Assembly: GCA_043228905.1 (NCBI GenBank) | Contig: JBHGNT010000009.1 | Location: 12,648,001-12,712,000 of the forward strand | Origin: Azolla caroliniana | Taxonomy: Eukaryota > Plantae > Polypodiophyta | Reading direction: 5' to 3' | Length of the DNA stretch: 64,000 bases | Shown: positions 19,362-51,541 of the stretch, piece by piece | Numbering within the stretch: the first letter of the stretch is position 1 | Layout: each line of letters begins with the position of its first letter | Notes under the pieces: generated by a model | What the model was told of the DNA's origin: nothing | The model's input: the letters and a program-made list of their open reading frames with translations, nothing else | The model's database searches: none | Position numbers and translations under genes: made by a program

Positions 19362-22300
19362 AGCCCTAGATCTGTGCAGCCCACTAGTGGTTCCATTTCC
19401 TCTAAGCAAGTTAGCAATGTGTTCGTAGCCCAAGTAGCCGTTAGTACTAAAAGTACCCCTCCAGTACATGTCTTAGCACTCCTAGATTCCGGAGCAAACT
19501 CTTGCTTTATGGATAAGAATTTTGCCCAAGCTCATCAGATATCTCTTAGAAAACTCTCGTGTCCAGCCTCCGTAGTAGTCATTGATGGTCGTCCCATTGC
19601 TTCCGGAAATATCATAGAAGAATCAGAGCCCGTTAATGTTGTCCTAGATAATCTAGCATGTGTAATATCATTTAATATAATTAGTATTCCAGAACATCCC
19701 ATAGTTTTAGGATTACCATGGTTTGAGTTACATAACCCAGACATAGATTGGAGGACAAGGAAAATTCAGTTTCGACAAACCCAAGGATCTACCCAGAAGA
19801 TTGCAACCATTTCACTACATCAGTTGCGTGAGGAAGGGCACAAGGAGGACATGTTTCTCTTCGCAATATCAGTACAACCCTCCAGCACCACCAAAGAGGA
19901 GTCCATCGTTCAACTTCCCGAGAAGTATCGTCAGTATGCTGATGTGTTCGATAAAATACAAGCCAACACACTTCCTCATCATCGACCGTACGATTGCCCC
20001 ATCGATCTACAACCAGGAAAGGAGCCGCCATGGGGGCCAATCTACAATTTGTCACCTACGGAGCTAGAAGTCCTTCGAGCCTACATAGAGGAGAATTTGG
20101 CTAATGGTTTCATTCGGCATTCAAAATCTCCCGCAGGCGCACCTATTTTCTTCGTCAAGAAGAAGGACGGATCTCTTCGCCTTGTTGTCGACTATCGTGG
20201 CTTAAATAAAGTCACCATCAGGAATAGGTATGCACTGCCCCTTATCTCAAGTCTTTTAGAACGGATCAATGGTGCCAGGTTCTTCACGAAGATCGACTTA
20301 CGAGGAGCATATAACCTCGTACGAATTCGACCAGGAGACGAATGGAAGACGGCGTTTCGTACTAGATACGGGCACTTCGAGTATACAGTCATGCCGTTCG
20401 GTCTCACCAATGCGCCGGCAGTCTTCCAGCACATGGCAAACGATATATTCCGAGACCTGTTGGATAATTTTTTGATCATCTACTTGGATGATCTATTGGT
20501 TTATTCGAAGACCCAGGAAGAGCATGATTCTCATGTACTATCAGTACTAAAACGACTTCGAGAACATGGTCTGTATGCAAAACTAGAAAAATGTAGTTTC
20601 GGGTGCAACCAGGTGGAATTTCTCGGCTATGTCATCTCCTCAGAAGGCATCTCCATGGACCCAGCTAAAGTCAAAACGGTGGTGGATTGGCAGACTCCGC
20701 GTTCGGTGCGGGATGTGCAGTGTTTTCTAGGCTTTGCCAATTTTTACCGGAAGTTCATACAAGATTACTCAAGGATCGTTCTGCCTCTCACACAGCTTAC
20801 CAGAAAGGGGCAAGCGTTCATTTGGTCTGAAGAAACAGACTTGGCTTTCGAGAATCTGAAAAAGGCGTTTACATCAGCTCCAATTCTGGGTCATGTCGAT
20901 CCAGAAAAACCATTCATTATCGAAGCTGACGCATCGGATTTCGCATTGGGGAGCATTCTGTCACAACATGGTAATGACGAGAAGCTACATCCTGTGGCTT
21001 TTCATTCACGAAAGTTTGACGCCGCCGAAATCAACTACGAGATACATGATAAGGAACTCTTGGCAATAGTGGATTCATTTATGCAATGGAGGCATTTCCT
21101 AGAGGGATCCCCTCACCCAGTCACTGTATTCAGTGACCACAAGAACCTTGCCTACTTTCAGGATGCTCGTGTGCTGAATCGACGTCAAGCCCGGTGGGCC
21201 CACTTCCTCACACGTTTCGACTTCAAAATTACTTATCGACCGGGGAAGCACCAAGGGAAGGCGGATGCATTATCACGACGTTCATATCTAGCACCGCGTC
21301 CCGGCGAGCCAGCCTTCGATAACCAAAAGCAAGTCATCTTGGGACCGGCACGACTACAAGCAGCACAGATCTTCGACATGCCCATGGATTCTCGCGTTAT
21401 CGATACCATACGGGAGGACTTGAAGACGGATGCATTCGCCCAAGCCATTCTAAAACAAATCGATCCCTCTCAAGCATCTTGTTCGGAATCGCAACAACCA
21501 GGTACGGATTATCGGCAATTCCAATACCATGATGGATTACTATTTTTTAAGACACTCTTGTATGTTCCTAATGGTACTGGTCGCCTTCAAGTAGTCCAAA
21601 GCTGTCATGATACATATACTGCTGGGCATTTTGGTAGTACTAAAACATTAGATTTAGTACAACGCTCATTCTGGTGGCCCCACATGCGACAATTTGTCGA
21701 AGATTTTGTTCGGACTTGTGATACATGTTGCAGGGCAAAAATGCCAAGGCATCATCCATATGGTTTGTTAGAACCATTACCAATTCCGAGTAAGCCGTGG
21801 CAATCCATTGCTCTAGATTTCATCACGGACCTCCCGATGTCTAAGGGATTCGATGCGATCTTAACAGTCGTAGATCGCTATACGAAGATGGCTCATTTCC
21901 TACCATGTACTAAAGAAATATCCAGTGAAGGAACCGCCGAGATTGTTATGCGCGAAGTATGTCGGCATCACGGCCTCCCTGATAGCATCATCAGCGATCG
22001 TGGACCCCAATTCGTTTCGAAGTTTTGGAAGCACTTCTTTAAAATGCTTCAAGTGACTTGTAACCTTTCCTCCGGCTACCACCCGCAAACAGACGGCCAG
22101 GCAGAACGAACAAATCAAACGTTGGAGCAGTATCTTCGGTGTTTTCTAAGTTACCATCAAGATGATTGGGCAGATATTCTCCATTTCGCCGAGTTTGCAT
22201 ATAACAACTCCGTCCACTCCTCAACAAAGGTTACCCCATTTTATGCTTACACAGGTTGTCATCCCCGATGGTGTGTAGTTGAAACCCCAGAATTGCCCAC

Positions 22301-22895
22301 GAATCCTTGCGCAGAGGATCGTTTGGAGCGATTACACAAGATACAAGCGGATCTATCTACTCAGCTCCAGCAAGCTCAACAAGCACACAAGGTTTATGCG
22401 GATCGTCATCGACTTCCATCCAGTTTTGACATTGGCGATCGGGTATGGCTGCTTCGACGACACGTCAAGACTACTCGCCCATGTGAGAAGTTGGACTATC
22501 GGCGGTTAGGTCCTTTCCGTATTATCGGGAAGATTAATGATGTTGCTTTTCGGCTCGAACTCCCTCCGCACCTTCGGATTCATCCGGTGTTCCATAGTTC
22601 TCTCCTCGAACCCTATCGCGAAAGCACCATTCCAGGCCGTATTCCACCACCTCCACCCCCGATCGAGCTTGAAGATGGACCTGAGTACGAGGTTGCCGCC
22701 ATCCTTGATTCCAAGATTACTCGCAACAAGCTCTACTATCTAGTCGATTGGCTAGGATATAGTCCCAGCGAGCGTACTTGGGAGCCGATCGAGAATGTGA
22801 CCAATGCTCGTGCTCTTCTCGAAGACTTCCATCGTCGATATCCACACAAACCGGGTCCTCAATCCAAAACGACTCGTGACACTCGTCGTTTTTAA
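19356..22895 (+). CDS. pol: Pol: PR-RT-RNase H-integrase-chromodomain (frame open from 19302)
   Basis: LLDSGA, YLDD, EADASD, HDTYTAGH/CDTC, ISDRG, GPF motif, YEVAAILDS..YLVDWLGY..TWEP chromodomain. Confidence 0.96.
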   Translation: MDSPRSVQPTSGSISSKQVSNVFVAQVAVSTKSTPPVHVLALLDSGANSCFMDKNFAQAHQISLRKLSCPASVVVIDGRPIASGNIIEESEPVNVVLDNLACVISFNIISIPEHPIVLGLPWFELHNPDIDWRTRKIQFRQTQGSTQKIATISLHQLREEGHKEDMFLFAISVQPSSTTKEESIVQLPEKYRQYADVFDKIQANTLPHHRPYDCPIDLQPGKEPPWGPIYNLSPTELEVLRAYIEENLANGFIRHSKSPAGAPIFFVKKKDGSLRLVVDYRGLNKVTIRNRYALPLISSLLERINGARFFTKIDLRGAYNLVRIRPGDEWKTAFRTRYGHFEYTVMPFGLTNAPAVFQHMANDIFRDLLDNFLIIYLDDLLVYSKTQEEHDSHVLSVLKRLREHGLYAKLEKCSFGCNQVEFLGYVISSEGISMDPAKVKTVVDWQTPRSVRDVQCFLGFANFYRKFIQDYSRIVLPLTQLTRKGQAFIWSEETDLAFENLKKAFTSAPILGHVDPEKPFIIEADASDFALGSILSQHGNDEKLHPVAFHSRKFDAAEINYEIHDKELLAIVDSFMQWRHFLEGSPHPVTVFSDHKNLAYFQDARVLNRRQARWAHFLTRFDFKITYRPGKHQGKADALSRRSYLAPRPGEPAFDNQKQVILGPARLQAAQIFDMPMDSRVIDTIREDLKTDAFAQAILKQIDPSQASCSESQQPGTDYRQFQYHDGLLFFKTLLYVPNGTGRLQVVQSCHDTYTAGHFGSTKTLDLVQRSFWWPHMRQFVEDFVRTCDTCCRAKMPRHHPYGLLEPLPIPSKPWQSIALDFITDLPMSKGFDAILTVVDRYTKMAHFLPCTKEISSEGTAEIVMREVCRHHGLPDSIISDRGPQFVSKFWKHFFKMLQVTCNLSSGYHPQTDGQAERTNQTLEQYLRCFLSYHQDDWADILHFAEFAYNNSVHSSTKVTPFYAYTGCHPRWCVVETPELPTNPCAEDRLERLHKIQADLSTQLQQAQQAHKVYADRHRLPSSFDIGDRVWLLRRHVKTTRPCEKLDYRRLGPFRIIGKINDVAFRLELPPHLRIHPVFHSSLLEPYRESTIPGRIPPPPPPIELEDGPEYEVAAILDSKITRNKLYYLVDWLGYSPSERTWEPIENVTNARALLEDFHRRYPHKPGPQSKTTRDTRRF

Positions 22896-22906
22896 GGGGG
22901 GGATAG

Positions 22907-23197
22907 TGTCATGGCAAGACTCGAACCCATGACCTTATGCTACATGGGTCGAGGTCTTACCATTAGACTATACATTATAAGTTGTAGGATATTATTTTCA
23001 TTTATGTTTTATTTTAGAAATTGATGTATATTCCAGATTTCTCTGGAACATTCTAGAAGCTTCAGGATTACTCTTAGAAATACTATAAAAGAGGGCACTA
23101 GGCGTTATGTTGAACCAAATTGGTTCAACGCCAGTCTTAAGCCTTCTAGCCACAGTTGTACATTCTCTTCACGTAATACATATATTTCTCTCATCAT

Positions 23198-23239
<42 letters not shown>

Positions 23240-23383
23240 GTCTCGCTCACTTCTTCCTTCTCTCTCAAGAAGTTCTACACCCCTCATAGTACTAATCCTT
23301 CGTTTAGTACTAATCCCTTCTCTGTAGTACTAATCCTTCGTTTAGTACTAATTCCGTCTCCGTCTTACTACTGATTCCTGACA
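22907..23383 (+). repeat. 3' LTR of chromovirus copy 1
   Basis: Direct repeat of 17572-18048. Confidence 0.97.
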
Positions 23384-27610: not shown

Positions 27611-27860
27611 AAGATATTCAGCCATTATTGAACTTTATTACAATGGCATTAACTTATCAGCACATCCAAACTTAGTTGAATTTCTAATGTTCTCCACTCA
27701 GAGACCTATCATGTTTTTTTATATTTGCAAATTCTAATCAAGTTGTGGAACATGTGATACTAGTGCCTCCAAATTTTGTAGAGAGGGTATATTTGGATAT
27801 TTTAAAGAAGAATCAACAAGTGCAGTGCGTGACCCTTCCACTTGTGAACGTGAATGTGTT

Positions 27861-31975: not shown

Positions 31976-33110
31976 AACACGTTCGCGTTCACAAGTGGAA
32001 GGATCACGCATTCCACTTGTAGAATCTTCTTGAAAATATCCAAATATACCCTCTCTACAAAAATTGGATGCACTAGTATCACATGTTCCACAACTTGATT
32101 AGAATTTGCAAATATAAAAATACATGATAGGTCTACAAGTGGAGATCATTAGAAATTCAAATAAGTTTGGATGTGTTGATAAGTTAATGTAGGCATAATA
32201 ACGTTCAACAATGGCTGAATATCTCACTAATGTGCGACATGGGAAACACTAAGTTAAAGACTTATATTAATTTGGTAAGTTTTACAAAAATATGAGGTGT
32301 ACTTGTAACCATACTAATAAAATGAGTTATAATTTATACTTTTACCTATACTCGCATGTATATAATTGTGGGCAATGTAGGATAGTGAACTTTAGGATAA
32401 TGTGATTGCAATAACTGACTTATTAAGGTAGTTAATATTTGTATTTAAAGTTGATCTAATCTATTCCTCAGTTTGTTCGTATGGGATCAAACCATATGTA
32501 TATAATTGTGGACAATGTAAGACAGTGAACTTTAGGATAATGTGGTGGAAATAACAAACCTATTAAGGCTTTCATACTTGTATTTAAAATTGATCTAATC
32601 TATTCCTTAGGTGATTCACACGGGATCAAACTCCGAACGATAACACTAGTGGAACTACAAGCGTATAAAAACATGCGGATAACGCTAGTGGAACCATTAT
32701 CAAGACACTACACAATCTAAGCAGCAATGGAAGAGAAACATAATAGTTTTAACAATAGAAGACAAAGATCCATAATATATGGACTGGTATATTTTAGACA
32801 CGGAATGACAATCTCAATAATTGATCGCAAATAACAACATGGACAATCATGGCAACAATTCTACGAGCATGTTATGTTAAGGTAAAGATTGACCAAAATC
32901 AGCCTTAATTTAAACTAATTCATGTTTCTCCATATTGGTAGTCAACAATGCACGCGGTGAAACCAATGTCATAAGTCTACAAACCAAGTATATAGAAATA
33001 AAATTGAAACATATAGAAGATTATAAAGAATGGAATACACCAAGTAAAACCCAAAATTTGTATTAGTAATGTGAATTCCAAACAATACATTTCGTGAACA
33101 AAAGAGTCTA

Positions 33111-35701
33111 TTACATAGCAATCAAATCGTCAATGTCATTTTCTTCTTCATCCTGTATAGAAGTCTCTTCGGCTATACGTGCATTGTCTTCCCCTGTTAA
33201 CCAAGCCAACTAAATATCTTCTATAAGCTCATCACCAAGCTCTATTAGCTCCCCCGGTTCCCCGGCTAACGGAGGAATAAGGTCTCGGGAAGCAGGTTGA
33301 AACCTTTCGGTATCAACGAGGTTCTTTGCCCCGACCTCCTCGTCCTGGTCTGGGCACTCCCACAAAGCCTTAATCCTCATGCTTATAAATATAACTTGCT
33401 CCTCGTCCTTCTCCAATGCAACTGTGTTTCTGAAGAGCTTCAATGCACATGCAAACGTTGTCCCTACCAAGAAAGCAACAAGAAGAATTAGTTTTCAAAC
33501 AAAAAAGAATCAGTACTGGTTATCTCAAGATCGTTAACCAAGTTCGAGGAATACCTGTGCCAGAAAAGAGGTCTACTATATAATCTCCTTCTATAGAAAA
33601 AATCTTGATCAAGCACATCATAAGTCGCTGAGGTTTTTGGTATGGGTTGACAAGTCCCCGTTCTATCGTGGTGACATGTCGCAATTTCTGTATCACTGTT
33701 GGATATACTAGCAGATTTGAACCTCCAACTTCATTAGAATGCTCCTTGATTCTTTGTTTCTTTATTTCATCGAAGTAGCCAACCGTAATGTATTCAATGG
33801 AATTTATGAACCGAAAGGTTGGCCCTCTATTGACATTGGTTTTTATCCTATAACAAATATTGCATCAAGTTAAGAATAGATTGAACAATCTTAAGAAAGG
33901 CAATATAGTGAATGAGACTTATAAATAATCCTTACCATGCAAGGTTCTCGATGCCATGGCAACGAGATCTCAAAGCTTGAGCTACCGAGTACCCTTGGTC
34001 CATACTATGAAAGACAACTATCCTCCACAAGGATGCAGTCGTTAGCTCAGCAAAATCCTTGACCGTCTTCTCTAACTGTTTGAACCTAAACGGTTCATCG
34101 TCGTATGTTGATCCTACCATTCGAAATCCTTATGGAATATCAGCAACCATTAGCGTATATTCCTTCTTTGGAACTTTTTGGATCACGTCAACGACATCGC
34201 CACAAATCATGTTGTAGTAAAGATCTCTTGTAATATCCTTTTTGTGGCTAAATTTTTTGAAGGAGCCATCTTCCTCAATTTCGTATGCCTTGACTAAGCG
34301 ACGATCCTTTTCTTTTCTGGCTCTCTCGAGATGTGCAAGGAAGGATGTCAAGCAATCATGTATATCCTTAACTTTTCCTTGTTTCTTGCCACGACACGGT
34401 TTCTAATAGAAGCAATAAGACATCAAGTATTATTACACAACCTCTACATATGAGGAAAACTTAATGAAAAACACCAATACTAACCCAATCCTTGAATGCA
34501 ATAAAATACTCGGATAACGCCTTATATGAAGACATTAGAGGATAATCCTCGGTCACTTGTTCCCAAGTTATACATCCAAGTTGTTTTATCATAACTTCTT
34601 GGATCTTCATGTACACCTTATGACTGTGAAATTAGAAAACGAGATTAGAAATTTCAATTGCACCATATTGAATTCAATATCACTATTTGAAAGACTTACT
34701 TATTGAACTCAGTGACCATTTCTTCAAGGCTTAAATCCTTCGCCACAACCCTTGACAAAACAGACACAAGAAGTTGCTCGTCCTTAATACCTTGCATCGC
34801 TCTCCACAAATACAGCTTCATGTCGTCAGCCGTTTCTTCAATTGTCAAATCAATTTTCTTGGCCGCTTGTGATTTTAATTCTAGTTGAGGGTCTACCTTA
34901 CACTTCTTTTGTCGTTGACCCTTGACCTCCTTATTCTCCCACATTGAGAAGATTTGATCTTGTAGGTCCCATACTTCTCCATCTCTAAAGGCAAGTTGAA
35001 ACCAGGACTCATATTTCCGAAGACCATCGAATTTAACATTATCATCCACCACAATGCCGACTTCATGCAAGCATTGACGTCGTAGGCCTAGATGTAGCTT
35101 CACACTGAACTATTGTTTGATGTCCAAGTACTCGTGGTGGAATAACCTTATACGCTCAATCGATGACATTTTCTGCCTATAGTCATTATCATTATTGTGG
35201 TCCCATGCCAACAATTGTGAGGCCCACGTAAATTTTGCACTCGGCATACTTGAAGAAGAAAGTCATTGGATGTTCTCTCACAAGTTGCCGACGTGCCTCC
35301 GCCGAATGCGATCCACCTATTACAAAGTAATTGTATTGATCATGATTTCTTATGTCGAATTCTTCCGTGCTTTCACATTCTTCGAGATCCACCATAACAA
35401 TAAAAGGCACAACTATAGCATGTGGATTAATTTTCATTTTTTTCTTGAGATTTTGAACATGCATTCGGTGTGGCTCTCTAATCTCAAGTGGTCTTCATCC
35501 TATTTTTTCATCTACAGGGGGCCGATGGATATGTGTTATAGGCGAATTAAACACTTGCCCTTTTCTCACCAGTTTACGCTGCATTAACTCTCTTCGTATC
35601 TTATTCTGCTCGGATGACAACACACCCGATGCCAGCTCAGCACCTGGCGTCCCCCTGGCGTCCTCATCTTCGTTTGAGCTTGATGAGTCGGAGTCCGACA
35701 T
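33111..35701 (-). pseudogene. ParB-like domain fused to beta-class N6-adenine/N4-cytosine DNA methyltransferase, 5 coding exons
   Basis: Exons 35701-34700, 34623-34485, 34402-33936, 33847-33555, 33463-33111 with phase-consistent GT-AG introns; YFVIGGSH, ICGDVVDVI, ADIP*G, WIK, NPYQKP, EGDYIVDLFSGTGTT, VALEKD. Confidence 0.82.
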
Positions 35702-37176
35702 TTTACTGGTCTTCTTTTTGGATGGTCTTGATTGCACTTTAGATGCCCTTTTCGGGGCCTTCACTAGGGAGCGAAAATATAAGTTAGGTGGTTGCATAGA
35801 TTAAGGTTGTATATTAAAGTATACATAAGTAGATCAAGACAAAAATTAGCAGGCGATTTGTGCTAAACTATAAATATCAATCATACTTTCAGTGAACATG
35901 ATAGTCCTTTATTCGGAATTTAAATCTAGTAAGGGCTATTCAACTTCGAAAATTATATATCTCAATAATTATACAAGGTTATGTATCATATTGAAGGGTA
36001 GGTGTGGCTTATATTAATTCCATATCCATATTGTATAGAATTTTAATACAACATAACTAAATTTGGTATCATAAAGGTAATTCGTGGGTTATTTTCTATT
36101 ATTTTAAGTTATTATAGGTCATAAAACCTTTTTAAGTAAGGTTGCTAGTTGTTACAAAATATAGCAAATGTCACTAAAAATAGCTGAATTGAACATAAAT
36201 TTGGTATCTTTTCACACATATACTAACTTGTTCCCCCGAAGACACAATATTCCTGTTTAAATTTTATGTTTTATACAATAACTCGATACGGCGTATCGAG
36301 TTCATGATTCACATTGTTGATGTTAAGGGGGAGATGACAATTTTGTGTTGCGTGCTCTGTGTGCTTTGTCTACTCTGTGTGCTCTTGTGCTTTGTTCTAC
36401 GCGTGTGCTTTGTGTGATTGAGATATGAGGAGGTCTTTCTATTTATAAGGATTGACCACAGTGGTTAAAGTAACCACAGTCACTTTAACCAGGGTTGGCA
36501 AGCTTAAGGTTAGTTAGTTAGACCAATGAAAGAGTTGCTTTATTTAGTACATAATCTTGAATGTACCAATCACTCTCTAATGGATTTGAATTAAATGATG
36601 CTTATGAATGCATCAATCATTAAATACTCAAACTAACATATTAATGATTATTTTATAGTCAAACTAACATACAATGACTTTGAAGGTCATGAAGGAAACA
36701 ATGATAGAGGTTCATGAATGAACCAATGATTAAATACTCAAAGCAACATTTTTATGACTCTCAAATACTTTGTATTAAAGATGTGGCCATGAATGAACAA
36801 ATGATTGAAAAGGCTTATATTTAAAATGGTGGGCATGAATGAACCAATGATTGAGAAGTTCTATATTAAATATGGGTGCCATTAATTAACCAATGATTTT
36901 AACTTTAAACCAACATATATATGGCTTGGTAATGATTGTATTTATATTATACTTCATGGCTAAAGTAAATTTAATTTAAATTATATATTATAGAATTAAT
37001 AAGGTATAAAATATAATTGATTTAACTCTTTATTTATTGTATTAATATAATATAGACATTATATTGAGGGAGTTTCTGTTTAGAGAGGAGTTTATGTTTA
37101 GAGAGGGGAGGAGCCTATCAGTTTTCTATATTAGCCCAAGGACATAACTTAAAGAGCTTTGTGTGGACCTTAAGCC

Positions 37177-37809
37177 ATGAGTCAAGACTCACCGTTCTCG
37201 ATTGAAGAATATTGTTTGTCATCAGACTCTTCGTTTTTCTACCGAAGAGTATTTATTGTCTATCGACAGACTCACCATTTTCTATCGAAGAATATTGTAT
37301 AAGCTCATCTTCACCTACAACACATGTGAATAATGACACATGTGAAGAGTTCTCTATTGAAGAATACGATATTAATAAAGATACAGAGAATGAAGGTAGT
37401 GCCAATGAAACATCGAATATCATGGGCGATGGTCACAACAAAGAATTAGATTGTAACAAGGATACACCAACTTCTATGCAGGAAGAGAAATCTAGAAACC
37501 CTATGCATATTAGAAGAATCCCACGTAGAATTCGTCTGGCCAGATTTAACTTGGTGACATCAGATAAGCAAATTGGATTTGATGTCAACAAAATATGTTG
37601 TGCCCGTGGTTGTATGTCTATGATTGGAAAATCAAAGTTGCGAGAATTAAGGCGATACTATTTTTCGATGACTGGTGATGAGCAAGACACTTACCTCGGG
37701 TCACATATGCAACTAGTGTCTGACAAATGTACGGGGATCAAAGTATCATTCGAGTATTATATCTTCCATGTGCAACAGATATGTAGAGTTGCATTCAAAA
37801 TTGTGTTAT
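37177..37809 (+). pseudogene. DUF7869/Sola1-like transposase, 5' part
   Basis: DSPFSIEEYC repeats, CCARGC, ICRVAFKIVL; joins 47458 in frame (KIVL|CVSNMRL) when the nested element is removed. Confidence 0.78.
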
Positions 37810-38175
37810 GGGTGAAAGCATGCGAGTGGAAACAATTAGCTATGTCCTTGACATAGCTAATTAGCTATGCAAAAAGCTACCATTGATAAATAGTCATTTT
37901 AGTAAGAAGCCCTCATTAATAAATTAACTATGCAAAAAACTACCATTGAAAATACTAGAGTGTTTTAATTACATATGTAAATGAGTGCCATAAATGTGCA
38001 ACATAAACGTGCAACATAAATTGATATGTGCACCATAAATGTGTACCATAAATTATATATCGAATTCCTAGGTCCATTATGCATGATCCTTTGCCACATC
38101 ACGTAGGCCATCTCTAGTTGAGTATTGTGGGTTAGTTGCTACCACTGTTGCTAAACCCTATCGAGTCCACCTTCC

Positions 38176-38660
38176 GCCACTCTACACTCAGGGGCCGCTA
38201 CTGTGCGTTCCAAGCATCATCAAAGAGTTGTTCAATCTGATGGGGTTCTCTTCTTTGTGCCACTCTACACTCAGGGGCCGCTACTGTGCGTTCCAAGCAT
38301 CATCAAAGAGCTGTTCAAGCTGACGTTCTCTTCTCTGTGCCACTCTACACTTAGGGGCCGTTACTGTGCGTTCCAAGCATCATCAAAGAGCTGTTCAATC
38401 TGACAGGTTTCTCTTCTCTGTGCCACTCTACACTCAGGGGCCGCTACTGTGCGTTCCAAGCATCATCGGTAACTGTTCAATCTGACGGGGTTCTCTCCTC
38501 CATTGCCATCATTCTACACTCAGTTGCCGCTACTGTCCAGTCCTGGATTGCTTCCACATTTCGATTTGACGGAGTTCACTCATCCAACAGCAACATTCTA
38601 CACTCAGTTGTCGCCATTGGTCGATCCTGGATCGCCTCCTCAACTGTTCGATCCAACGGA
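38176..38660 (+). repeat. About 83-bp tandem repeats upstream of the Sola2-like transposase
   Basis: gccactctacactcaggggccgctactgtgcgttccaagcatcatc four times, then degenerate units. Confidence 0.9.
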
Positions 38661-38829
38661 GTGAACTCCTCTATTGTTCGGTCTTGGATTGCAATAACTT
38701 TTCTGTCTATTGATTATCTTGTGTATTGTTGTGTTTAATCTTGTGTATTGTGGAATATTTTTGTGTATTGTTGTTGCCCATAGCCATCTTAAATACTTGT
38801 TTTTTTTTCTGGAAATTTAGGGTTTTAAT

Positions 38830-41800
38830 ATGTCCAGCCAAATGGAAGGGGAAGGAGGGTGTTTAGAATTACCCCTCAATGATCATAAGGATAGGGATGA
38901 TGCTATTAGGACACAAAAAGCCATACGAAACTATTGGACAGAAAAAAAAAGGAAACATCGTCAATTGTTGAAGGATACGAAAGCCACACTCAGTAAAGGT
39001 AAGGATAGTTTAGCTGAGAATGTAAGTAATGCGACTACCATCATAGAGAGAAAGGTTGTAGACTATTTCAATGTTCAAACCAAGCACATCAGCAATGAAG
39101 AAAAGAAGGTAGTACTTTATGGAATATGTAATGATCCATCGATAAAGGACTTAGTTGATTGTGATGGTCTTAATGCAAACATATCATCTATTTTAGTAAA
39201 TAATCTTCGTAATAGTTTCGTATCCATGAGCAGGTCAGAAGATGATCTTGTCTTAAAAAGGTCTAGTCTAATGATGTTACTTAATAGTGATGTTGACGAT
39301 ATAAACATCAGTGAGCTATCTAAGGTAATTGGTGTTAGTAGAAAAACAGTGTACAATACAATGAACCGTATAATTTCCTCGGGTGAAGGAACTAGTCTAC
39401 TAAAGCTAACTACAAGATGTAAGCCAATGACACCCATAACATTTGAAATCAAGGATGTAATCACAATGTTTTGGACTAATGAGAGTAGGGTTTCACCCAA
39501 TAAAAAGGATTTATGCAGGAAACGTGTTGGAAGAAATCAATACGAGGAGCATCCCATTCATCTTCTTGATGTACCTTAGGTATTTATATTTATCTCAACA
39601 TTTGTTTTGACTCTACACGGAAAGTTAATTAGCTCGGTTAGCAGAAAAGCTAATTAGCTTATCAGTTACATTTACCTCAGTTAGCTACTAGGATAGCTAC
39701 TACATAGGTAATTGGCTACTCTCAATAGCTACTACCATGATAGCTAATTAGCTATTCTCAATAGCTAATTTAGGTACTACCAGATAATTAGCAGTCCTGG
39801 TAGCTAGTTAGCTATTTCGTTATTACCAGCTAATTAGCTACTAGGAATGCTAATTAGCTACCATGATAGCTAATTACCTTACTAGGACAGCTAATTAGCC
39901 ACCATGATAGCTAATTAGCTACCATGATAGCTAATTAGTTACTAGGAAAGCTAATTAGCTACCATGATAGCTAATTAGCTACTGGGACAGCTAATTAGCC
40001 ACCATGATAGCTAATTAGCTACTAGACCAGCTAATTAGCTACCATGATAGCTAATTAGCCACCATGATAGCTAATTAGCTACTAGACCAGCTAATTAGCT
40101 ACCATGATAGCTAATTAGCTACTAGACCAACTAATTAGCTACTAGGACAGCTAATTAGCTACCATGATAGCTAATTAGCTACTAGAATAGCTAATAAGCT
40201 ACTAAAATAGCTAATAAGCTACTAGAATAGCTAATTAGCTACTAGAATAGCTAATTAGCTACTAGGATAGTTAGCTAGTTACGAGAATAACTAATTCCCC
40301 TTTATTACGCAGGTCGAATTATTTATTAGGTTCAAACGAATGCATCCAACTATCAAAGTTCAACTACGAACATTCGAGTCTCTTAAGCCACACTTTGTGA
40401 GACGCTTAAAGGATCGATACACATGTTGTTGCATTTACCATGTACAGATGGGTTTTCTGAAGGACTCTGTTAATCTACTACGTCACCATAGCGCATCCCT
40501 AACTAATACAGTTTGCACATGTGGGTGCCCAATCTGTCGATCAAGCTCGCAAGAGGAGTGTAAATCATCTGAGCACGTTATCTCTTCCATGAGTTATTTA
40601 TTAGATTCAATATTGTGTCCGAGAGAAACTGACGCTATCTTCCATATTCATAAATGTGTCATGGGTTTATGTCAAGATTGTGGCCCTACTAGATTTAGGT
40701 GGTGTCCAAATGAATTGAGTAGTGAAATATTGATCTCTGTGAAGTTCTTTGAGTTAGTGAACACCAATTTCGAAGGAAAGGTGTGTAAAAGAAAGGATCT
40801 AGTTCGGAAGATGCTTAAACCAAGGGATTTGGTGTCTCTGTTTGTAGTATCTCTAGGAAAGTTCATTAAACACAACTTCATTTATTCATGGCAGGCCCAT
40901 CAGTTTAAGACTTGCATATCTGATTTCCCAAATGATGTAGTAGTCTTCGTAGTAGATTTCGCAGAGAATTATACTTTCAAGCAGTAGAATGAAATTCAAT
41001 CTATGCATTGGTGTTCAGTTTAGGTAACCATTTTTGTGCACATAACATATTTTCGAGTTTCAGGTGATGTTAAAAAAGTAATTCATTTCTTTATTTCCGA
41101 TGATAAGAAGCATGATACCTTGTTCGTCCAACACTATTTTAAGTTACATTGGCAGTGGTTATTAGCTCAACATTTGGAGCTTACTCAACATTGGGTCTGG
41201 TTTGACGGAGCTGCGTCACAATTCAAGGCTTGACGTCCATTTTATTTTGTGGGGAGGTATCCTGCTATAACAGGTTTGGAGATGAGATGGAATTTTTTTG
41301 GGTCTGGCCATGGTAAAGGTGAACATGATGGTGCAGGGGCTGTTATAAAGCGGGCACTTACCCATGAACAACTAAAGACAGATGGTGTGCACATGAATTG
41401 TGCATCACATGTAGTTGAATTTTTAAGAACAAATATGACAACGAGTGCAACATGTGTTTATTCCTCGCAAGTCCGAGATATCAAACGTGAATTTTGGGAA
41501 GTGAAGATAGATGAAGTAAATAGGGAGAAGACCTGGGAGTGCCAAGGAATTCCCGAATTGCAATCTCTGCATGCTGTTCGCGGTTATTCCAGGTTGGATG
41601 GTCATTGTATTGCGGTTAGAGAATTGACTTGTTTTTGCTTCCATTGTGTGCAGGGAAATTGGAGATATTGTCTAAACAAAGCATACATTCAGAATTGGGA
41701 GTATCACACTCTGAATGATAAGTAGTTGATGGAGAAACAGGGCAGAATGCTGACTTCACATATGAGGGACTTGGAGATACTTTGAGTGATGTCCTGAACG

Positions 41801-42150
41801 TTGGGGATAACTTCGCTGTAAATGCTAAAGAAGGCAATTCAGAGGGTGTTGATTTCTATATATTGAAGTGCACGGTTAGTAAACAGTGTGCAAGGTAGAA
41901 TATTGTAGATGCATGGGGAAATTTTGTATCTGTCGGGACATTCTACATCGAAGGCATTTTTTATGCAAAACTAGATGACTACGAATATGTGTACAGGCTG
42001 TTAGAAGACAAACCAGCGGCGTACATGTACTCTCATTTGGTCAGGTGCATCAACGTCCCAATGTCAGAATACAATAGCTGCTCAGGTTTATACACTGTTG
42101 GTGCTAATGTGTATGAATGTATTTACAATAGTATGCCATGGAATTTGTAG
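38830..42150 (+). pseudogene. Sola2-like DDE transposase, 2 exons (intron 39580-40312)
   Basis: FESLKP, TCCCIYH, Cys-rich region, VDFAENY..Q.EIQSMHW, ISDD..HD, DGAASQFK, FFGSGHGKGEHDGAGAVIK; several premature stops. Confidence 0.85.
39620..40295. repeat. Array of the palindrome AGCTAATTAGCT in the transposase intron
   Basis: About 20-bp units such as gatagctaattagctaccat. Confidence 0.95.
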
Positions 42151-44299
42151 ATACAAGTAGCAATTACCATGTTCTCTTGTAAAACAAAAATGTATTTCGC
42201 GAAAACAGTTAAATAAATTCGTTTGAGAATCAATTTCTTGTATACAGTCTGCTTTCTGTGCTTCTTTCTCAATAAAATCATGTCTTTTTTGTTAAGTTTT
42301 AAGTTATAAGTTATAGCGAAATAGTCATCAGTAGCTAATTAGCTGTACAAATGCAGCTAATTAGCTGTCAATAGCTAAATAGTCATCAATAGCATGAAAT
42401 CAACAATCTGCAACATATTCCTCAAATTACATAGTAGATAAGTACAGTGGGAACAAGTAATTAAATTCTTCATTGAATAATGTCATCTCTTTACATATTT
42501 ATAAATTACCATTGGAAATGTCTACAAATCTCCTATAAACAGCTAAGCTCTTGCTAGTCAGTGGAACGAGTCTACATATATTATCCGCATATCGATCTCG
42601 GTATGGAGTCCACAACCATGCACCTAGTTGGCAGCTCACTGTTTGCACCAGGTACTGTTCAGGCATTTCCTCGGGTAGAATGAGACAACATCTCCGAATA
42701 TTGAAGTAGTGCTAGAAATGTTCTGTATCCAAAATAAATGTATTGTCGGCATTATATTCAGGCCAAGTAGCCCAAAAATCAGAAAGTCTCTTGAATCTTG
42801 TAGCTTCCATTTGCTCACAATTTTCTCGTGCCCATTGACCTTTAAAACGACTTCGCCATTTTGGGAAGAATCTTGCTAAACACCTCCACACATCTGATTT
42901 TGGTTTTTCACTCCAAATAAACAAATCAAAGTATTGCACAGCCCACTCTAGAAACTGATTCGTGTCCCTCCTTGGCTGCATATATCTCACACTCATCAAG
43001 ACTTTATCAAGCTCCAAGATCAAGGCTCTTCTTTCGACTTCTAGTGGTTTAGGTTTCCATTCCTGAAACTGAGCCGCTGTTACACCATTTTCTGGTAGGA
43101 CACGATCAATCTCAATCAGCTCAGGTTCGGCCAACACAACTGGCATCCTTTTCCTCTTCAAACCCCTAGTCGACTGTGTTGGGCTTGGCTTCACATTCTG
43201 GTGCTCTTGTTTTGTCGACTTAGTTATCAATCCTTGGATTACCTCGGTGCATGTAGCTATTGATCTGCTCGATATCAGTCCACTGGTATCACATGTTGCA
43301 TCTACCTGCAACACCAAGTCATCCGTGCAACATGTTGCATCTACCTGCAACACCAAGTCATATGTGCAACATGCTTGATCAACTTGTGTGACCAGATCAC
43401 TTGTGTCAGTTGCTACATCTACTTTCAAGATGGGGCCCTTTAAACATGCTGCAACATCAACAGTATCCACACTGCCATTGGCCTTACGAGCAATAGAATC
43501 AAACCCTTTAGACTCTGCAACATCAGAAAACACCAACATATTCACACTCACAAAGTAACTAACAGTCTCACAAAACAACATCCTGAACATCAATGAGTTT
43601 CAGTCATAGAACAACACTCTTCAAATTATCTTGGAAAAACATCATAGAGTTCCATTACATAATGTGGATCAAGCAACAACCAATCTGAGGTTTTACTTGT
43701 CCAACAGGATAGTAAAACTTCATAAAACCCTAGCAAAATCCCTAAGCTAACAATCATATCCAACTAAACAGTATTTCGCTCCACTACGTTTGGGCCCCTT
43801 GACCGAGTAATTGGTCTTGTTCCCGATCGTGGCCCCTTCTTCAGCCTTTTTCTGGTCGGTTGCCCATTTAGCCTTGCTTCTTTCACCCAATGCGCAAGTG
43901 TGTCCTCCGACAACCTTCCCATCGCCTCAACAGCTAATTGCACATCAGCCGTTTCTTGAACTAGCTTTTCAAGTACAGAGGGATCTGTTTGGACATTTTC
44001 AGTAGTTGGGCTCGGTGGGGTGGAATCAAGGTCTTGAGATTCGAAGAAATGTTGCATCAAGTGTTCATAAACACTGTTGTTGTGAACCTCAGTTTTACAT
44101 GTTGTTTCCACTATTTCATGGCATTTCACATCGTTGCCTAATTCAGTACATTGTTCCAAAAGAATAGGGTGGAGCTGATCTGAAGGAGATGTGATAGCAA
44201 GACTCTTACGTTGGCAGCAGTATCCTCATCTGTTGCAGTGTCATCAGCACCAGACACATCATGTGTCGTCCTTAATCCACAAGATTCTACAATAACATG

Positions 44300-45145
44300 G
44301 CAGCTATTTAGGATAGCTAATTAGCTACTTTACTAAACTATGGTAGAAGCTAGGATAGCTAATTAGCTAGTACGATAGCTAATTAGCTAGTATGATAGCT
44401 AATTAGGATAGCTAATTAGCTAGTACGATAGCTAATTAGCTACTTTACTCAACTATGGTAGTAGCTAGGATAGCTAATTAGCTACTTTACTAACTATGGT
44501 AGTAGCTAGGATAGCTAATTAGCTACTAGAATAACTAATTAGCTAGTAGGATAGCTAATTAGCTACTTTCTCAACTATGTAGTAGCTAGGATAGCTAATT
44601 AGCTGCCAGTAGCTAATTAGCTGCTAGTAGCTAATTAGCTACTAGGATAGCTTATTAGCTACTTTACACAACTATGGCAGTAGCTAATTAGCTACTAGGA
44701 TAGCTAAGTAGTTGCCAGTAGCTAATTAGCTAGTACCATAGCTAATTAGCTACTAGGATAGCTAATTAGCTGCTAGTAGCTAATTAGCTACTAGGATAGC
44801 TTATTAGCTACTTTACACAACTATGGTAGTAGCTAATTAGCTAGTAGGATAGCTAATTAGCTACTAGGATAGCTAATTAGTTGCCAGTAGCTAATTAGCT
44901 ACTTTACACAACTATGGTGCTAGCTAATTAGCTATGAGTAGTTAATTAGCTAGTAGCTAACTAGCTGCCACTTAGCTAATTAACTACTGTAGTAAACTAT
45001 GGCAGTAGCTAATTAACTAATAGGATAGTTATTAGCTGCTTTAATCAACTATGGTAGTAGCTAATTAGCTACAACGATAGCAGCAAAATAGTTTCCATAC
45101 TTTTTACGACTTAGCTAATTAGAAAAGACTAAGCTTATTAGCTAC
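44300..45145. repeat. Second AGCTAATTAGCT array
   Basis: ggatagctaattagctac units interleaved with aactatggtag. Confidence 0.95.
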
Positions 45146-46439
45146 AGTATGGTATACCTGTTAGTTTTCTCCACTCATTTGGTAGAGTTGTACTGCAATC
45201 TCCCAAACAGAATGCAGCAATTCGACAGGCATGTTGAAAACAAAGCAGATGTTATGTGTGGTTGCATGGTTGTAGGTGAACCAACAAAGACACAGTTTTG
45301 TCCTCCACACCTAACCCTCAAGCGATGCAACGTGCTTGAACTGTCAATAAATCATTTTCTGGTTCTCCTTCATTTGGTAAGGGAGCAAGAATGTTCAGGT
45401 CCAAATCCTGTCTGGTCCTTACCATTCCCTCCACAAAATGTAGCTGCTTCTTAAGGCAGCTAACTACCTGTTCTTGATGAATGTATTGTTCCTTCAACTT
45501 TGCTCAGGAATCGTTAACTTACTTGAAGCTTATCCAAATTGTAATCTGCAACAGTATTTACACCTAGAAGGTCCAGGTTCATTGAAAGAACCTAGATCTC
45601 TATTTGCAGTTGTATTTTACACTGGGGATCCATTGACCCCTCTAATTCAAGCTCCTATTGCGCAACCTATTCGAGATAATGCTTGATTAGCACATTTTAC
45701 CCTTAAAGTTATTTATAACACAATCACATACCAGCAAAACAGTAGTTACCTGAATCTTATTTCTAATCGTTGTAACAGCGGAAGTAACTTTGCTCTCCAT
45801 TGCAGAAGCCATTGTGGCTTTCTCTAAATCAGTCTTAAAAAATGCCAATGTCTCACAGGCTTCATGGACATTTTTTAGCATATAGCTAACCAATGTCTCA
45901 CCTGTATCATCGACATTGGCTTTCCTTGGGTGTCGGTGTGGTGTATGCCCCCGGTCTTGCTGGGAGTCGGCAATTGCATCAACAGCTGCCATGCTCCAAA
46001 ATCTGTCTATTTTTTGTGCCAAGGTCCCCATCTTTCGGCATCTTTTTACCGATGCCTCACCATAGACTGCCCAAGCTACCCTATACATTTCAGGGTCTCT
46101 GGATTCCTTCGCTATTTTGCAATACTCATATGCAAATGCTCTAGCAAATGAAACTGACAACTCATTGTTGACTGGGATCTCCTGATGAACTTTCTGGTGC
46201 AGCCTCATGCAGTCATCGTACAAGTCGGCTCGTACATGCTTCAGCTTGACCTTGCCTTTGACTCTAGGCACTGTATATACTGTCATCCAGTCTACATCAC
46301 TGATCAATTTATCACTTAGGACAGCAAGGTCAACACCCTCGAGTGACAAATCATAGGTGTTGTGGAAGTCCTCCTTTGTCTCGCAAAATTTTGCGAAGTT
46401 TAGCACTCTCGGATACGGAGGAACGAGCCATCTGAAATA

Positions 46440-46905
46440 TCATTTCAGAAATCAGAAATAGTGCAAAATCTTTAACTTAGCAAATCAGAAACCCGAATCA
46501 TAATTTGTATTCAGAAATTTGAAATCAGAAACCCTAATCAAAATCTGTAATCAGAAGTTTGAAATCAGAAACCCTAATCAAAATCTGTAATCAGAAGTTT
46601 GTAACTAGAAACCCTATTCAGAAATTCTAATCAGAAATTTATAATCAAAAACCCTAATCAGAAATTTCAATCAGAAATCCTAAACAAAAATTTATAAACA
46701 AAAACCCTATTCAAAAATTCTAATCTATAATCAAAATTTGAAACCAGAAACCCTATTCAAAAATTCTAATCAAAAATTTATAATCAAAAACCCTAATCAG
46801 AAATTTCAATCAGAAACCCTAATCAGAAATTTCAATCACAAACCCTAATCAGAAATTTATAAACAAAAACCCTAATCAAAAATTTCAATCAAAAACCCCA
46901 ATCAT
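46440..46905 (+). repeat. AAACCCTAATCAGAAATT-type minisatellite (telo-box-like)
   Basis: About ten aaacccta motifs in degenerate 25-38-bp units. Confidence 0.85.
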
Positions 46906-47457
46906 CACTAAAGACAGGATTAAACACAAAAAAAGTAATATAAACACACATGCTGCTACTCTCCGATCTACGAGACATCCTTGTATGGGACTCCAAGGAC
47001 TTCGCCCTATTCGATTTTGGGGAAATATGAATCGGCACCAAAGTTCAGATAGTAATCAAAAAGAAAAAAAAAATGTTTGGGGTTTCTGTAACTGAAACAT
47101 ACCTGGACGATGATCGAGCGGGTTCTGTGTTGTAGCTCTCAATCTGCAATGTCGATTTTCTACTGCTGTGGGAGCTATGTCTGCGTTCGTGCTCTGAGTA
47201 CTCCATCTGCGTTCAAAATCAAACTTAAGCTAAACAAGAAATTGATGACATTGAAGTCGACCTTAGATGATGGTGCTATTCCCCAAGTTCCACTACGTCT
47301 GAAACAGAAGTTCAAATATTTGAGTTTTTTCATAAATTAGTTTTTCAAATATTTGATTTTCCCACAAAAAAGACTAGCTAAACAAATAGCTAATTAGCTA
47401 TGGCCATTTTAGTAGCTAATTAGCTATAATAGTATTTCCACTCGCATGCTTTTACCC

Positions 47458-49220
47458 TTATGTGTTAGTAACATGCGGTTACATAGAGTACAACAACGTC
47501 TACTTAGCGGGGATCAGATGCTCAATTGTAAAGAGGTTCCAAGTATGAAAGGTGCAATTGGAAGACATGCTATTGGTTGGATGAAAAGTTACTTTCAGTT
47601 AAATCGTGAAGTAATGCCCACTACAGGTAGGATGCACCTCTCTGATAATTACACACGTCGGGAATTTTATGATGTCTATCGATCAGGTATGATGGGCTCA
47701 CGTAATAAATTTGTCACATATAGCCAATTCACAAGATTATGGAGAGCTCGGTTTTCAAATGTTATCATTCCACGTAAAGTACGCATGGGGTATTGCTCCA
47801 TTTGTGCAAATCTTAAAAGTTTAGCTAAAGGTGCAAAGACATCAATGGAAAAGGATATGAGTAAGAAGTTACTACAAGAGCATCGTGAGGCACAATCGTT
47901 AGAACGAAAGAAGGTGATGCATCATAGAGAGAAGTGTTTGAAGAGGCCCGAACAATACTTGTGCTTAATGATAGATGGCATGGACCAGAAGAAGATGTGT
48001 TTACCGCATATGCGGAGGCTCCCCAAAGATGTCAATGATGAGTGCCTTGTTCAAATGCACTTGGTGGGATGCTTGGCTTATAAAAGGTCAGTTGGACTTC
48101 ACGTCTTCATTAATTACCCCAATGTTCACAATGACCCTAACCTAACAGTTATAGTGATTCACCGAGTTTTGATGTCTTGGGGCCAACCGTTCCCCCCTGT
48201 TCTATACATTCAATTGGACAATACTGCTAGAGAGAACAAAAATTCAATTGTGTTTGGCTATCTAAGTATGTTGGTCAACCAAGGATTGTTTAGAAAAGTG
48301 AAAGTCAATTTTCTTTTGGTTGGCCACACACATGATCATATAGATCAGATGTTTCGCACATTCTCTAGATAGTTGTCTCGACATGATGCTTTCACATTAC
48401 CAAAACTATTTGATGTCATTTGTGATGCATATACACCATGCCCAAAAGTGTTACACATGAAGGAGGTATATGACTTTAAGAGATATATATCAGATGGGGG
48501 CGTTGGGAATGTTAAAGTGCTCGCCCAATTAAACAATATAAGCTTCAATCACATTTTTATTATAAAGAAAAATGAAATAAATGGTTCTACGCTTTTGTAT
48601 GCGAAACAATATTCATCTTCTACAGCATGGGGACCTGAAGGTGGTTGCCAGTTATTACTTTGTATGCCGAGTACAATTGTCCATGGAGCTAAACAAATGC
48701 CAATTGAGAAGAAAGGATAGTTGCATAGTGACATGGTATCGGAACAAAAACGGTTATGGCTCCAAGCCTTAGAAGAAAAAAGAAAGCATATTGAGGCCAC
48801 GAAGAAATATGCCGCACAACAAGACACATCATGGTGGGATGTATTTTTTAGTGATCAGAAAGGAATTATAGACAATTGTGTATTTGGTGATAATTGGAAT
48901 TTGGAAATGTCATTCACATGGTCGCTACAACATGATCGTGTAAATAAAACTCCAGAGCAACTAGCAAATGCGATTAATGACAGTTTGGTCCATCCACAAC
49001 AAAGAGACATTTATGTGGGACCAAGGATCACCAAAGCAACCGAAGCTAGATGGCAAGGCAATTTGCAAGAGCTCGTGACGGGGATGTTGATTGCAATGCC
49101 GACTGATGAGAACTCACATGGCCACCAATTTTGGGTTGGTAAAATTCTAGAAGTGCTAATGCATGAAATAGAAAACACGATCAAGTCTATAAACGTTCAT
49201 TGGTACAAAACTAGAAGTGC
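47458..49220 (+). pseudogene. DUF7869/Sola1-like transposase, catalytic part and C-terminus
   Basis: FTRLW, CSIC, IDGMDQKK..LP, LYIQLDNTARENKN, FLLVGHTHDHIDQMF; in-frame TAG stops; fused to copia sequence at ~49220. Confidence 0.8.
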
Positions 49221-51541
49221 AAGTTCACAAGTTATCTATAGAAGGAGGGAATTCGACGCAAATTCTCGTGTAAATACACGCCGCAGTAGAACTTCGTGGC
49301 CGAGCGAAAGAATTGGACGATTGAAGAAGCGGCCAGGGCAATGCTTGAAGAGAAGCATATGCCGAAATTCTATTGGGCTGAAGCCGTGAAGACGGCTATC
49401 TACTTGCAGAATTGGACCTCTACTAATGGAGGAGTATCGCACAAGAGCTATATCTCGGAAAGAAGCCAAACATGGCACACTTGCGGATTTTCGGCAGCTT
49501 CGCGTATGTGCACGTGCCGAAGGAGAAAAGGAGGAAGTTGGATGCCAAAGCCGAGAAATGTATCTTGGTCGGCTATTCAGATGAGCAGAAGGGATATAAA
49601 TGTTATAACCCTCGAACAAAGGAAGTACGCGTAAGCCGCGATGTCGTGTTCGACGAGTCCGCTTCGTGGTACTTGCCTTCACCTCCAGTACCTCAAGACT
49701 CCATTCCGAATTCTGAGGAAGAAGTTAGCAAGGCTGAGATGCCTCTACATGATGAGGAAATTGAAGCTCTAAGAGAGAGTCTGATCTCATTTCAGCTAGG
49801 TGGGCCGAATGAGGGGTTGGGCCGAAATGGCCAACATATTGAAGAGACGGCAAGTAGTGGAGACTCAGCCGTGATGTCCCTGCGTAAAGAACCGAGGAGA
49901 CAGTTTACGCGTAAAGAGAAGGGCAAGAAGAAAATGACGGAATACGACTTCGATAGTGCCGAGTTAGATCGGAGCGAGTCTGACTAGGGGCAAACTGAAA
50001 AGGAACCTCCACGAAAGAGGTCGACAGTAGCCGAAAAGGTCGTGAAATCGGGTAATCACGAATTACGTCGATCTACCCGCCTGAAGAACCCCATAAAGAG
50101 ATACGGGTATAATGAGTACATGGCGCACCATTATGCGTACATGACACGAGTGGCGGAAGTGTGTGAGCCGGAGAACTACGCAGAAGTGGCAAAAGACGCA
50201 AATTGGTGTGCAGCCATGAAGGAAGAGATGCACACATTGGCGGAAAATGAAACCTGGGACCTAGTTGACGCACCAAAAGGTGTAAAGCCGATCGGATGTA
50301 GGTGGGTGTACAAGGTCAAGTACAACACCAACGGCTCAGTCAACCGATACAAGGCCCGGTTAGTAGCGAAAGGCTACGCGCAGAAGCACGACCTGAACTA
50401 TGACGAGACCTTCGTGCCTGTCGCGAAGATGACTATTGTGCATGTTCTATTGGCAGTAGTAGTGGCAAAGGGGTGGCACTTACATCAGATGGATGTAAAG
50501 AACGTGTTCCTGCAAGGCGATCTTGAGGAGCAGGTGTACATGGTACAACCCCCCGGATTTCTATCCGAACAAAACACATAATACAGACTAAAGCAAGCCT
50601 TGTGAGCTTGGAACGCAAAGATTGCGCAACAGTTGCGTAGGATGGGGTTTGCGCCGTCGAAATCAGGCTCTTCTCTATTTGTTCGGCAAGGTCAATATGG
50701 ACCGGTCAGCTTGCTCTTGTACGTTGATGATTTAGTCATCGCCAGTGCCGACCTTGACGAAATCTGCCGCGTGAAGTCTTCGCTTGCGGCATCATTATCT
50801 CAGAAACCTTCATTACTTCCTCGGGATCGAAGTGATCCGTACCCCCGAAGGCATATTGATCAGTCAGTGTCATTACGCGTTGAATATGCTCTTCAAGTTC
50901 AGGATGGCAAGTTGTAAGCCCATCTCGACCCCTCTAGATAGAAACGCAAAGCTTCGCCGAGATTCGGGGAAGGCGTGCGACCCGACACGGTTCCAATAGA
51001 TTGTCGGAAGCCTTATCTATCTGACGATTACTCGACCGGATCTTAGTTATCCAGTCAGCCTAATCAGTCAATTCATGTCGCAGCCTACGGCCGAACACTT
51101 TCAGTGCGCGTAACGAATACTACGTTATGTCATCGGCATGAAAGACATGGCGTTGTTTTATCGGGCAGGCGTAGCCGAACAGTTAGTCAGCTACACGGAT
51201 GCCGATTGGGCCAGAAATGCCCACGATCGTAGATCCACATCCGGATATGCCTTCTCTCTGGGAAGTGTGGCGATTGCGTGGAGCAATAAGAAGCAGCCGA
51301 AAATAGCACTGTCGAGCACGGAGGCCGAGTATCGAGGGGCGACTGTCGCTACGTGCGAAGTCATTTGGCTAAAACGGCTATTACGGGATCTACATGTTGT
51401 CAGGAATCAGTAGTAAGACGGAGACGGAATTAGTACTAAACGAAGGATTAGTACTACAGAGAAGGGATTAGTACTAAACGAAGGATTAGTACTATGAGGG
51501 GTGTAGAACTTCTTGAGAGAGAAGGAAGAAGTGAGCGAGAC

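Follow-up and report, generated by a model that had tools for sequence, protein, structure and literature searches.

A probably transposon-borne gene joining a ParB/Srx-like region to a beta-class amino-methyltransferase domain: a decayed copy in Azolla caroliniana and its intact relatives

We analyzed a 64,000-nucleotide stretch of the Azolla caroliniana genome (contig JBHGNT010000009.1, positions 12,648,001 to 12,712,000), referred to throughout as the window. Its minus strand carries, between window positions 33111 and 35780, the remains of a gene that combined a ParB/Srx-like region with a C-terminal methyltransferase (MTase) domain and that probably belonged to a DNA transposon of the Sola1 superfamily. 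The gene consists of five exons separated by four GT-AG introns. Exon 1 survives as a remnant (34700-35780), which was delimited by alignment to an intact relative, L007; 96 homologous fragments of the ParB region were also found and aligned. It encodes a basic/acidic linker, the ParB/Srx-like domain (approximately 35150-35560), and a helical middle domain (34700-35109). Intron 1 (34699-34624; 76 nucleotides [nt], GTAAGT...CAG, phase 2) separates it from exon 2 (34485-34623; HKVYMKIQE...FIAFKDW), a segment present also in the Ginkgo gene models Gb_03516 and Gb_14868. Beyond intron 2 (34484-34403; 82 nt, phase 0) lies exon 3 (33936-34402), which encodes a linker followed by the first half of the MTase, including motif IV, read here as ADIP-stop-GF, and which aligns to residues 350 to 446 of the Ginkgo protein P0026. 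Intron 3 (33935-33848; 88 nt, phase 2) splits W^(I/T)K, and exon 4 (33555-33847) continues with W-IKTN, the target-recognition region, NPYQKPQ, and DLFSGTG (motifs X and I). Intron 4 (33554-33464; 91 nt, phase 1) splits FSGTG^TT. Exon 5 (33111-33463), placed by its frame and acceptor site, supplies the end of motif I (G-TTFACALK), RN.VALEKD, and an acidic C-terminal tail. A preliminary description of the locus had proposed four GT-AG introns of 76 to 91 bp with consistent phases, and all four could be placed at the coordinates given here; every motif that it quoted was found in the sequence.

Two other proposals of that description had to be revised. It began the gene at an ATG at 35701 and estimated a protein of roughly 750 amino acids (aa). 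We rejected this ATG as the ancestral start, since homology to intact relatives runs past it, up to 35780, and the exon spans of those relatives suggest a full-length protein of roughly 950 aa. In intact relatives, an N-terminal domain is followed by the basic/acidic linker, the ParB/Srx-like domain, the helical middle domain, and a C-terminal beta-class N6_N4 methylase with D-I-P-Y as motif IV and F-S-G-T-G-T-T as motif I. Their exon 1 is stop-free and about 555 to 569 codons long. Homology of the window copy to its relatives ceases at 35780, and approximately 190 N-terminal codons are gone from it.

The window copy is decayed and 5' truncated and can make no protein. Its codon after ADIP is a TAA stop (34130-34132), while the same codon is TAC or TAT (tyrosine) in 30 of the approximately 34 related copies that are readable at this site, as expected from the earlier proposal that a tyrosine of a DIPY motif had mutated to a stop. 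Comparison with the closest intact relative, L007 (86% identity), revealed three more in-frame stops (35495-35497, 35110-35112, and 33210-33212) and a single frameshifting 14-nt deletion near 35214, within the ParB-like domain. With four in-frame stops and one frameshift, the copy is dead, as had been proposed. A second copy, comprising the 3' part of the gene, lies inverted on the plus strand (14737-16278 and 27612-27860); it too is 5' truncated and is interrupted by a nested long terminal repeat (LTR) retrotransposon. This second copy has three stops of its own, which differ from those of the first, and reads through the position of the stop at 33210-33212. By itself, the window copy is an ordinary dead transposon gene.

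Relatives of the gene were recovered on 40 contigs (L005 to L044; ENA assemblies ERZ1034375 to ERZ1034427), and homologues were found in Ginkgo and in the fern Adiantum. All five exons are stop-free in L007, L013, and L017 to L022, and L009, L012, and L014 are stop-free as far as the contig or alignment reaches. GT-AG dinucleotides stand at the homologous intron positions in eight related contigs, in which the introns are 75 to 128 nt long (intron 1, 75 to 128 nt; intron 2, 81 to 93 nt; intron 4, 83 to 93 nt; 6 scorable contigs). At the Adiantum loci L004 and L002, the donor of intron 1 (after EF(N/E)K) and both sites of introns 3 and 4 fall in the same places. These comparisons support the view that the introns are real and conserved. 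Homologues had been expected beforehand to keep both the intron positions and the DIPY motif, and the intron sites just listed are indeed shared by Adiantum and the eight contigs. Bacterial contamination or a recent transfer was rejected as a source of the gene because its spliceosomal introns are conserved and the repeats around it are eukaryotic. Two RNA contigs with less than 90% identity overlap parts of exons 3 and 4 and are uninformative on splicing.

Between subfamilies, nonsynonymous divergence (pN) was 0.005 to 0.11 versus a synonymous divergence (pS) of 0.22 to 0.95, giving pN/pS ratios of 0.01 to 0.13. The ratio was similarly low in the ParB-like, middle, and methylase parts, and synonymous sites were near saturation. 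Strong purifying selection therefore acted on the gene as subfamilies of the element diverged. Coverage was 30 to 360 in most contigs with all exons open and 1 to 4 for decayed copies in the same assemblies; the high values suggest young multicopy families collapsed into one contig. The Adiantum model MCO5614432.1 (720 aa; L002:10001-81113) is a chimera in which retrotransposon integrase exons and the ParB-MTase gene are joined across 71 kb.

For domain assignment, exons were searched individually, and the analysis was carried by natural full-length homologues. The exon 4 open reading frame (ORF; 33523-33864) matched the Pfam family N6_N4_Mtase (PF01555) with an E value of 2.4e-6 and 28.1 bits, above the gathering cutoff of 26.7, and exon 5 gave a weak match to a CcrM model. 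Against the same family, the L007 exon scored 35.1 bits and Ginkgo P0026 scored 65.7 bits (E value, 7.6e-18). Adiantum P0035 matched positions 5 to 218 of the profile collinearly, with motif IV preceding FxGxG. The window shows the corresponding permuted order: ADIP(Y)GF stands in exon 3, and NPYQKP...DLFSGTGTT follows it in exons 4 and 5. The beta-class order recognized in the preliminary description is thus borne out by a Pfam match above the gathering score and by collinear full-length homologues, which support the prediction that the C-terminal domain is a beta-class N6_N4 amino-MTase. An exhaustive protein search with exon 4 returned 57 proteins, among them Ginkgo biloba models (Gb_37443 and four more) and at least six Adiantum nelumboides proteins.

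Phage and plasmid records that matched the methylase domain of Ginkgo numbered 1088 and 469, respectively; the matches spanned as much as approximately 90% of its length, with about 24 to 28% identity in the best-listed records. These phage and plasmid enzymes share PF01555 and the motif order with the plant domain, and the identity of about 25 to 28% between them suggests a prokaryotic origin. Linkage of ParB to a methylase is typical of phages (PMC4738411). Unlike the plant genes, the prokaryotic methylase genes have no introns, carry a canonical DPPY, and lack the eukaryotic N-terminal and acidic tail regions. The named sequence matches in the PDB (M.RsrI, CcrM, M.MboIIA, and DpnA) are all adenine specific. 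Because motif IV starts with D and these nearest solved enzymes are adenine specific, N6-methyladenine (6mA) seems a more likely product than N4-methylcytosine (4mC).

Motif IV itself is non-canonical. It reads D-I-P-Y in 30 related loci, D-A-P-Y in Adiantum, D-I-P-H in Ginkgo, and DLPR in P0040, so that the first proline of the (D/N/S)-P-P-(Y/F/W) catalytic tetrapeptide is replaced. This raises the alternative that the domain is catalytically dead or has been repurposed, either as a module that binds DNA or S-adenosylmethionine or as an enzyme acting on RNA or protein, and that no 6mA or 4mC is written on DNA. There is precedent in the MTase domains borne by DIRS1 transposons, which are probably inactive, and in eukaryotic amino-MTases, which have often shifted to RNA (Iyer et al., PMC4738411). 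We nevertheless consider this alternative improbable: strong purifying selection has preserved motifs I and X, together with the D and Y of motif IV, even though synonymous divergence is saturated, the fusion partner of the methylase is a DNA-binding fold, and the nearest solved relatives are without exception DNA adenine methylases.

The identity of the N-terminal region was addressed by profile and by fold. The family yielded no ParB_N match in Pfam, only DUF6551 at an E value of 0.003, which is below the cutoff of that family. Searches of PDB sequences with phmmer and with profiles of the domain were blank, and tblastn against phages returned a single match with an E value of 2. A profile search of a large protein collection with the family alignment added four weak matches and no algal protein. 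For fold comparison, an intact fragment with 89% identity to the window was modeled with AlphaFold, which gave a low predicted local distance difference test (pLDDT) score of 51. When this model was compared with 48,161 PDB representatives, three chains reached a Z score of at least 2, and all three are N-domains of the ParB family: pNOB8 ParB-N (5k5d; Z, 4.4 over 100 residues), PadC (6ryk; Z, 3.9), and KorB (8qa8; Z, 2.2). In the ESM Atlas, five of 10 rows were ParB_N clusters and one was DndB, with template modeling (TM) scores of 0.39 to 0.51 in the rows dominated by ParB_N and DndB, and a language-model neighbor was ParB_N (0.93). A first model, which spanned this domain and the middle domain (pLDDT, 57), gave nothing below an E value of 1 when searched against the PDB with Foldseek. 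VIA-align of the same model returned weak helical matches only (SAP, CARD, and DinB-like; Z of at most 4.7), which we did not trust.

The full family motif in this region is VIGG(S/C)HSxEARRQL, which we take to be closer to the GGCHR/DGxHR type of Srx- and DndB-like members. Taken together, the modeled folds support a ParB/Srx-like fold for the N-terminal region, and we do not accept it as a member of the CTP-dependent partition ParB proteins. The earlier assignment of a ParB/Srx-like domain thus stood by fold comparison and failed by sequence profile. Upstream of this region, intact relatives have a conserved N-terminal domain of approximately 100 aa (...YGRILHFDYEDMD..ILVMIDCARGVRKVFL...; L007:712-1029, also L014 and L017), which corresponds to residues ~50 to 125 of Ginkgo P0061 and is gone from the window copy. 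It had no match in Pfam or the Atlas.

The surroundings of the gene indicate that it is transposon cargo. Downstream of exon 5, a 3' untranslated/subterminal region (32021-33110, minus strand) with tandem repeats of approximately 140 nt (32356-32631; repeat family D19) is homologous to the second window copy and to L006 and L007 at 80 to 86% identity. It leads to an element terminus at 31976-32020 (minus strand), which reads inward as 5'-AACACGTTCGCG... and contains a subterminal palindrome, AAGTGGAA..TTCCACTT. Seven copies (the first window copy, the second at 27860, L006, L007, L014, L018, and L021) stop at one identical base (...GAACGCGAACGTGTT) 1.1 kb beyond the stop codon of the gene, with unrelated flanks beyond. 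On the other side, the plus strand carries a transposase gene oriented divergently to the MTase gene. Its N-terminal part (37212-37801) is contiguous with the remaining transposase in L012 and L014, and its catalytic part (47461-49217) matches Pfam DUF7869 with an E value of 4.7e-36. Homology of the transposase to its relatives ends at 49217, where Copia-type sequence starts. The transposase stands head to head with the gene, on the opposite strand, in the window, L012, L014, and three of the four Adiantum loci (L002, L003, and L004), and by eye its core motifs (DG..Q, DNT..ENKN, and VGHTH..IDQ.F) match those of the published Sola1-1_Ec32 transposase. Because of the common terminus and this repeated transposase linkage, the reading of the gene as cargo is supported, in agreement with the preliminary description, which had placed it on a transposon.

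The alternative is that the gene is a host gene, or a fragment captured passively in the manner of Pack-type elements, that merely lies beside transposon sequence and is no functional part of the element. Homologues are annotated as ordinary genes in Ginkgo and Adiantum, and no transposase lies within 10 kb at one Adiantum locus, L001, as such an explanation would predict. Set against this are the recurrence of the head-to-head pairing in the window, L012, L014, and the three Adiantum loci, the terminus common to seven copies, the many diverged copies of the gene, and the selection maintained on it across subfamilies; we regard a host or captured origin as highly improbable.

Palindromes recur in the neighborhood of the gene. 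Upstream of the gene, a perfect 23-nt palindrome, AACTCGATACGSCGTATCGAGTT, forms an array of 11 copies in L020 and one of 7 copies in L014, where the array sits between the MTase and transposase genes; the number expected by chance is none. In the window, a lone 23-nt palindrome, AACTCGATACGGCGTATCGAGTT, survives at 36280-36302, and it is arrayed 7 to 11 times in intact relatives. Adiantum has a different palindrome, TGTATTCYRGAATACA, in 8 and 10 copies, always between the two genes, and loci of another Adiantum subfamily carry three copies each of GGATTCNNGAATCC. The copies of GGATTCNNGAATCC lie partly within the long first intron of the ParB-MTase gene and not just in the intergenic region (L001:11156-11309; L003:42315, 43215, and 45557). 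In each of the three lineages examined, palindromes thus accompany the gene, next to it or within it, and each lineage has its own. Bacterial ParB proteins bind such palindromes.

The arrays might instead be binding sites for the transposase or elements of a bidirectional promoter, and not ParB targets. Their location in a divergent intergenic region would suit either role, and an unrelated element nested in the window has palindrome arrays without a ParB gene. We consider this explanation unlikely, though less so than a dead or repurposed methylase. Each lineage has its own palindrome, which always lies beside or inside the ParB-MTase gene, and tandem inverted-repeat arrays also adjoin a ParB-fusion gene in red-algal Plavaka elements (bioRxiv 10.1101/2025.02.11.637652).

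The nested element is a transposon of 9.66 kb (37802-47460) inserted in the transposase gene, with 23-nt terminal inverted repeats (TIRs; GGGTRAAAGCATGCGAGTGGAAA) and the target site duplication (TSD) TTAT; L012 and L014 connect window position 37801 straight to 47461. Its two arrays (39820-40359 and 44354-44903) have a 20-nt unit containing a 12-nt palindrome, AGCTAATTAGCT. It also contains a helix-turn-helix ORF (38830-39579) and, on the minus strand, a NIF-phosphatase-like ORF (42712-43593). Elsewhere in the window, the two Sola1-type element ends (27860 and 31976) are arranged tail to tail, separated by 4.1 kb in which Copia fragments are found. A pair of chromovirus-type LTR retrotransposons (17865-23383 and 51398-56916) is inverted and 100% identical over 5.5 kb, reflecting either two very recent insertions or a duplication in the assembly.

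The preliminary description had cautioned that novelty would need a search, and rightly so, as the arrangement is already published for the brown alga Ectocarpus. The 21.5-kb Ectocarpus element Sola1-1_Ec32 carries a 1104-aa ParB-like plus N4C/N6A MTase gene on the strand opposite its transposase (Dinatale et al. 2025, Genome Biol, PMC12477816). It resembles the plant elements in this arrangement, in the transposase core motifs, and in a terminus that also starts with AAC. It differs in its brown-algal host and in the length of its protein, which could be compared with ours by description, and the supplement to that study describes the gene as "Ectocarpus specific." Neither a palindrome array nor conserved introns nor a test for selection has been reported for the Ectocarpus gene, and the copies described here are from land plants. 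Our literature search found no land-plant report of a Sola1 ParB-MTase accessory gene. The kind is therefore already known from Ectocarpus, and its land-plant members are new.

Other systems share parts of the arrangement. In the red alga Bostrychia, Plavaka elements have two accessory genes, PAG2 and PAG3, one for a methylase and one for a ParB protein, with inverted-repeat tandem arrays beside the ParB gene, and self-binding and self-modification have been proposed for them (bioRxiv 10.1101/2025.02.11.637652). The arrays adjoining the ParB gene are the point of likeness; the elements belong to a Plavaka/CACTA-like superfamily, and their ParB is fused to a 2-oxoglutarate (2OG) oxygenase and their methylase to a SET domain, in two separate genes. 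Chlorophyte and chytrid ParB-helix-turn-helix proteins with Dam-type methylases (Iyer et al. 2016, PMC4738411) are likewise eukaryotic fusions of a ParB-type domain to a prokaryote-derived adenine methylase, but of the M.EcoKI/TaqI-like group and not the PF01555 beta class. According to the same 2016 survey, N6A methylases are few in land plants. Fungal KDZ transposons, as cited in PMC12477816, carry TET/JBP genes and so offer another DNA transposon with its own DNA-modifying enzyme; the enzyme is a 5-methylcytosine (5mC) oxidase, the transposase belongs to another superfamily, and there is no ParB module.

We put at about 0.8 the probability that the region at 33111-35780 is a decayed, 5'-truncated accessory gene of a Sola1-superfamily DNA transposon. 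For the function of the intact gene, we propose that the ParB-like module would treat the palindromes of the element that encodes it as parS-like recognition sites, that this recognition would bring the methylase to the element and place a 6mA mark there, and that the mark may benefit the element, for instance by counteracting silencing by the host or by controlling when it transposes. As a complete chain, this proposal falls somewhat short of an even chance. Several points weigh against our interpretation. Palindrome binding and methylation of the element are predicted only. The ParB-like part is recognized by no Pfam or PDB sequence profile, both fold models have low confidence scores (pLDDT, 57 and 51) and the Z scores are modest, and the CTP-binding box of ParB, GERRxRA, is absent from the family, with GG(S/C)HSxEARR in its place. 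The variants DIPY, DAPY, and, in Ginkgo, DIPH leave the activity of the methylase not assured. The RNA search found no run with this stretch. No second terminus, TIR, or TSD of the element was found, nor an inverted-repeat partner in the window or in L012 and L014, and the Sola1 assignment combines the Pfam DUF7869 match with a by-eye comparison of motifs to the published sequence.

The presence of meaningful 6mA or 4mC in plant DNA and the identity of the writers are disputed. Here, many copies of a ParB-like domain fused to a beta-class methylase occur in a fern, Ginkgo, and the lineage of the window, so that the pairing of this fusion with a Sola1-type transposase, known from a single brown-algal family, is extended to land plants. 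The new points are the conservation of the introns, the selection on the gene, and palindrome arrays that differ between lineages, and they lead to a testable model of self-recognition and self-methylation. On a broader and rather doubtful reading, Sola1 transposons of ferns, Ginkgo, and the lineage of the window would be currently or recently active and would mark themselves by means of parS-like arrays and a 6mA/4mC writer, coinherited with the transposase from a time before brown algae and plants separated or passed elements between them. If the model is true, these elements would represent a self-targeted, transposon-encoded epigenetic system in plants and a concrete source of non-5mC DNA methylation.

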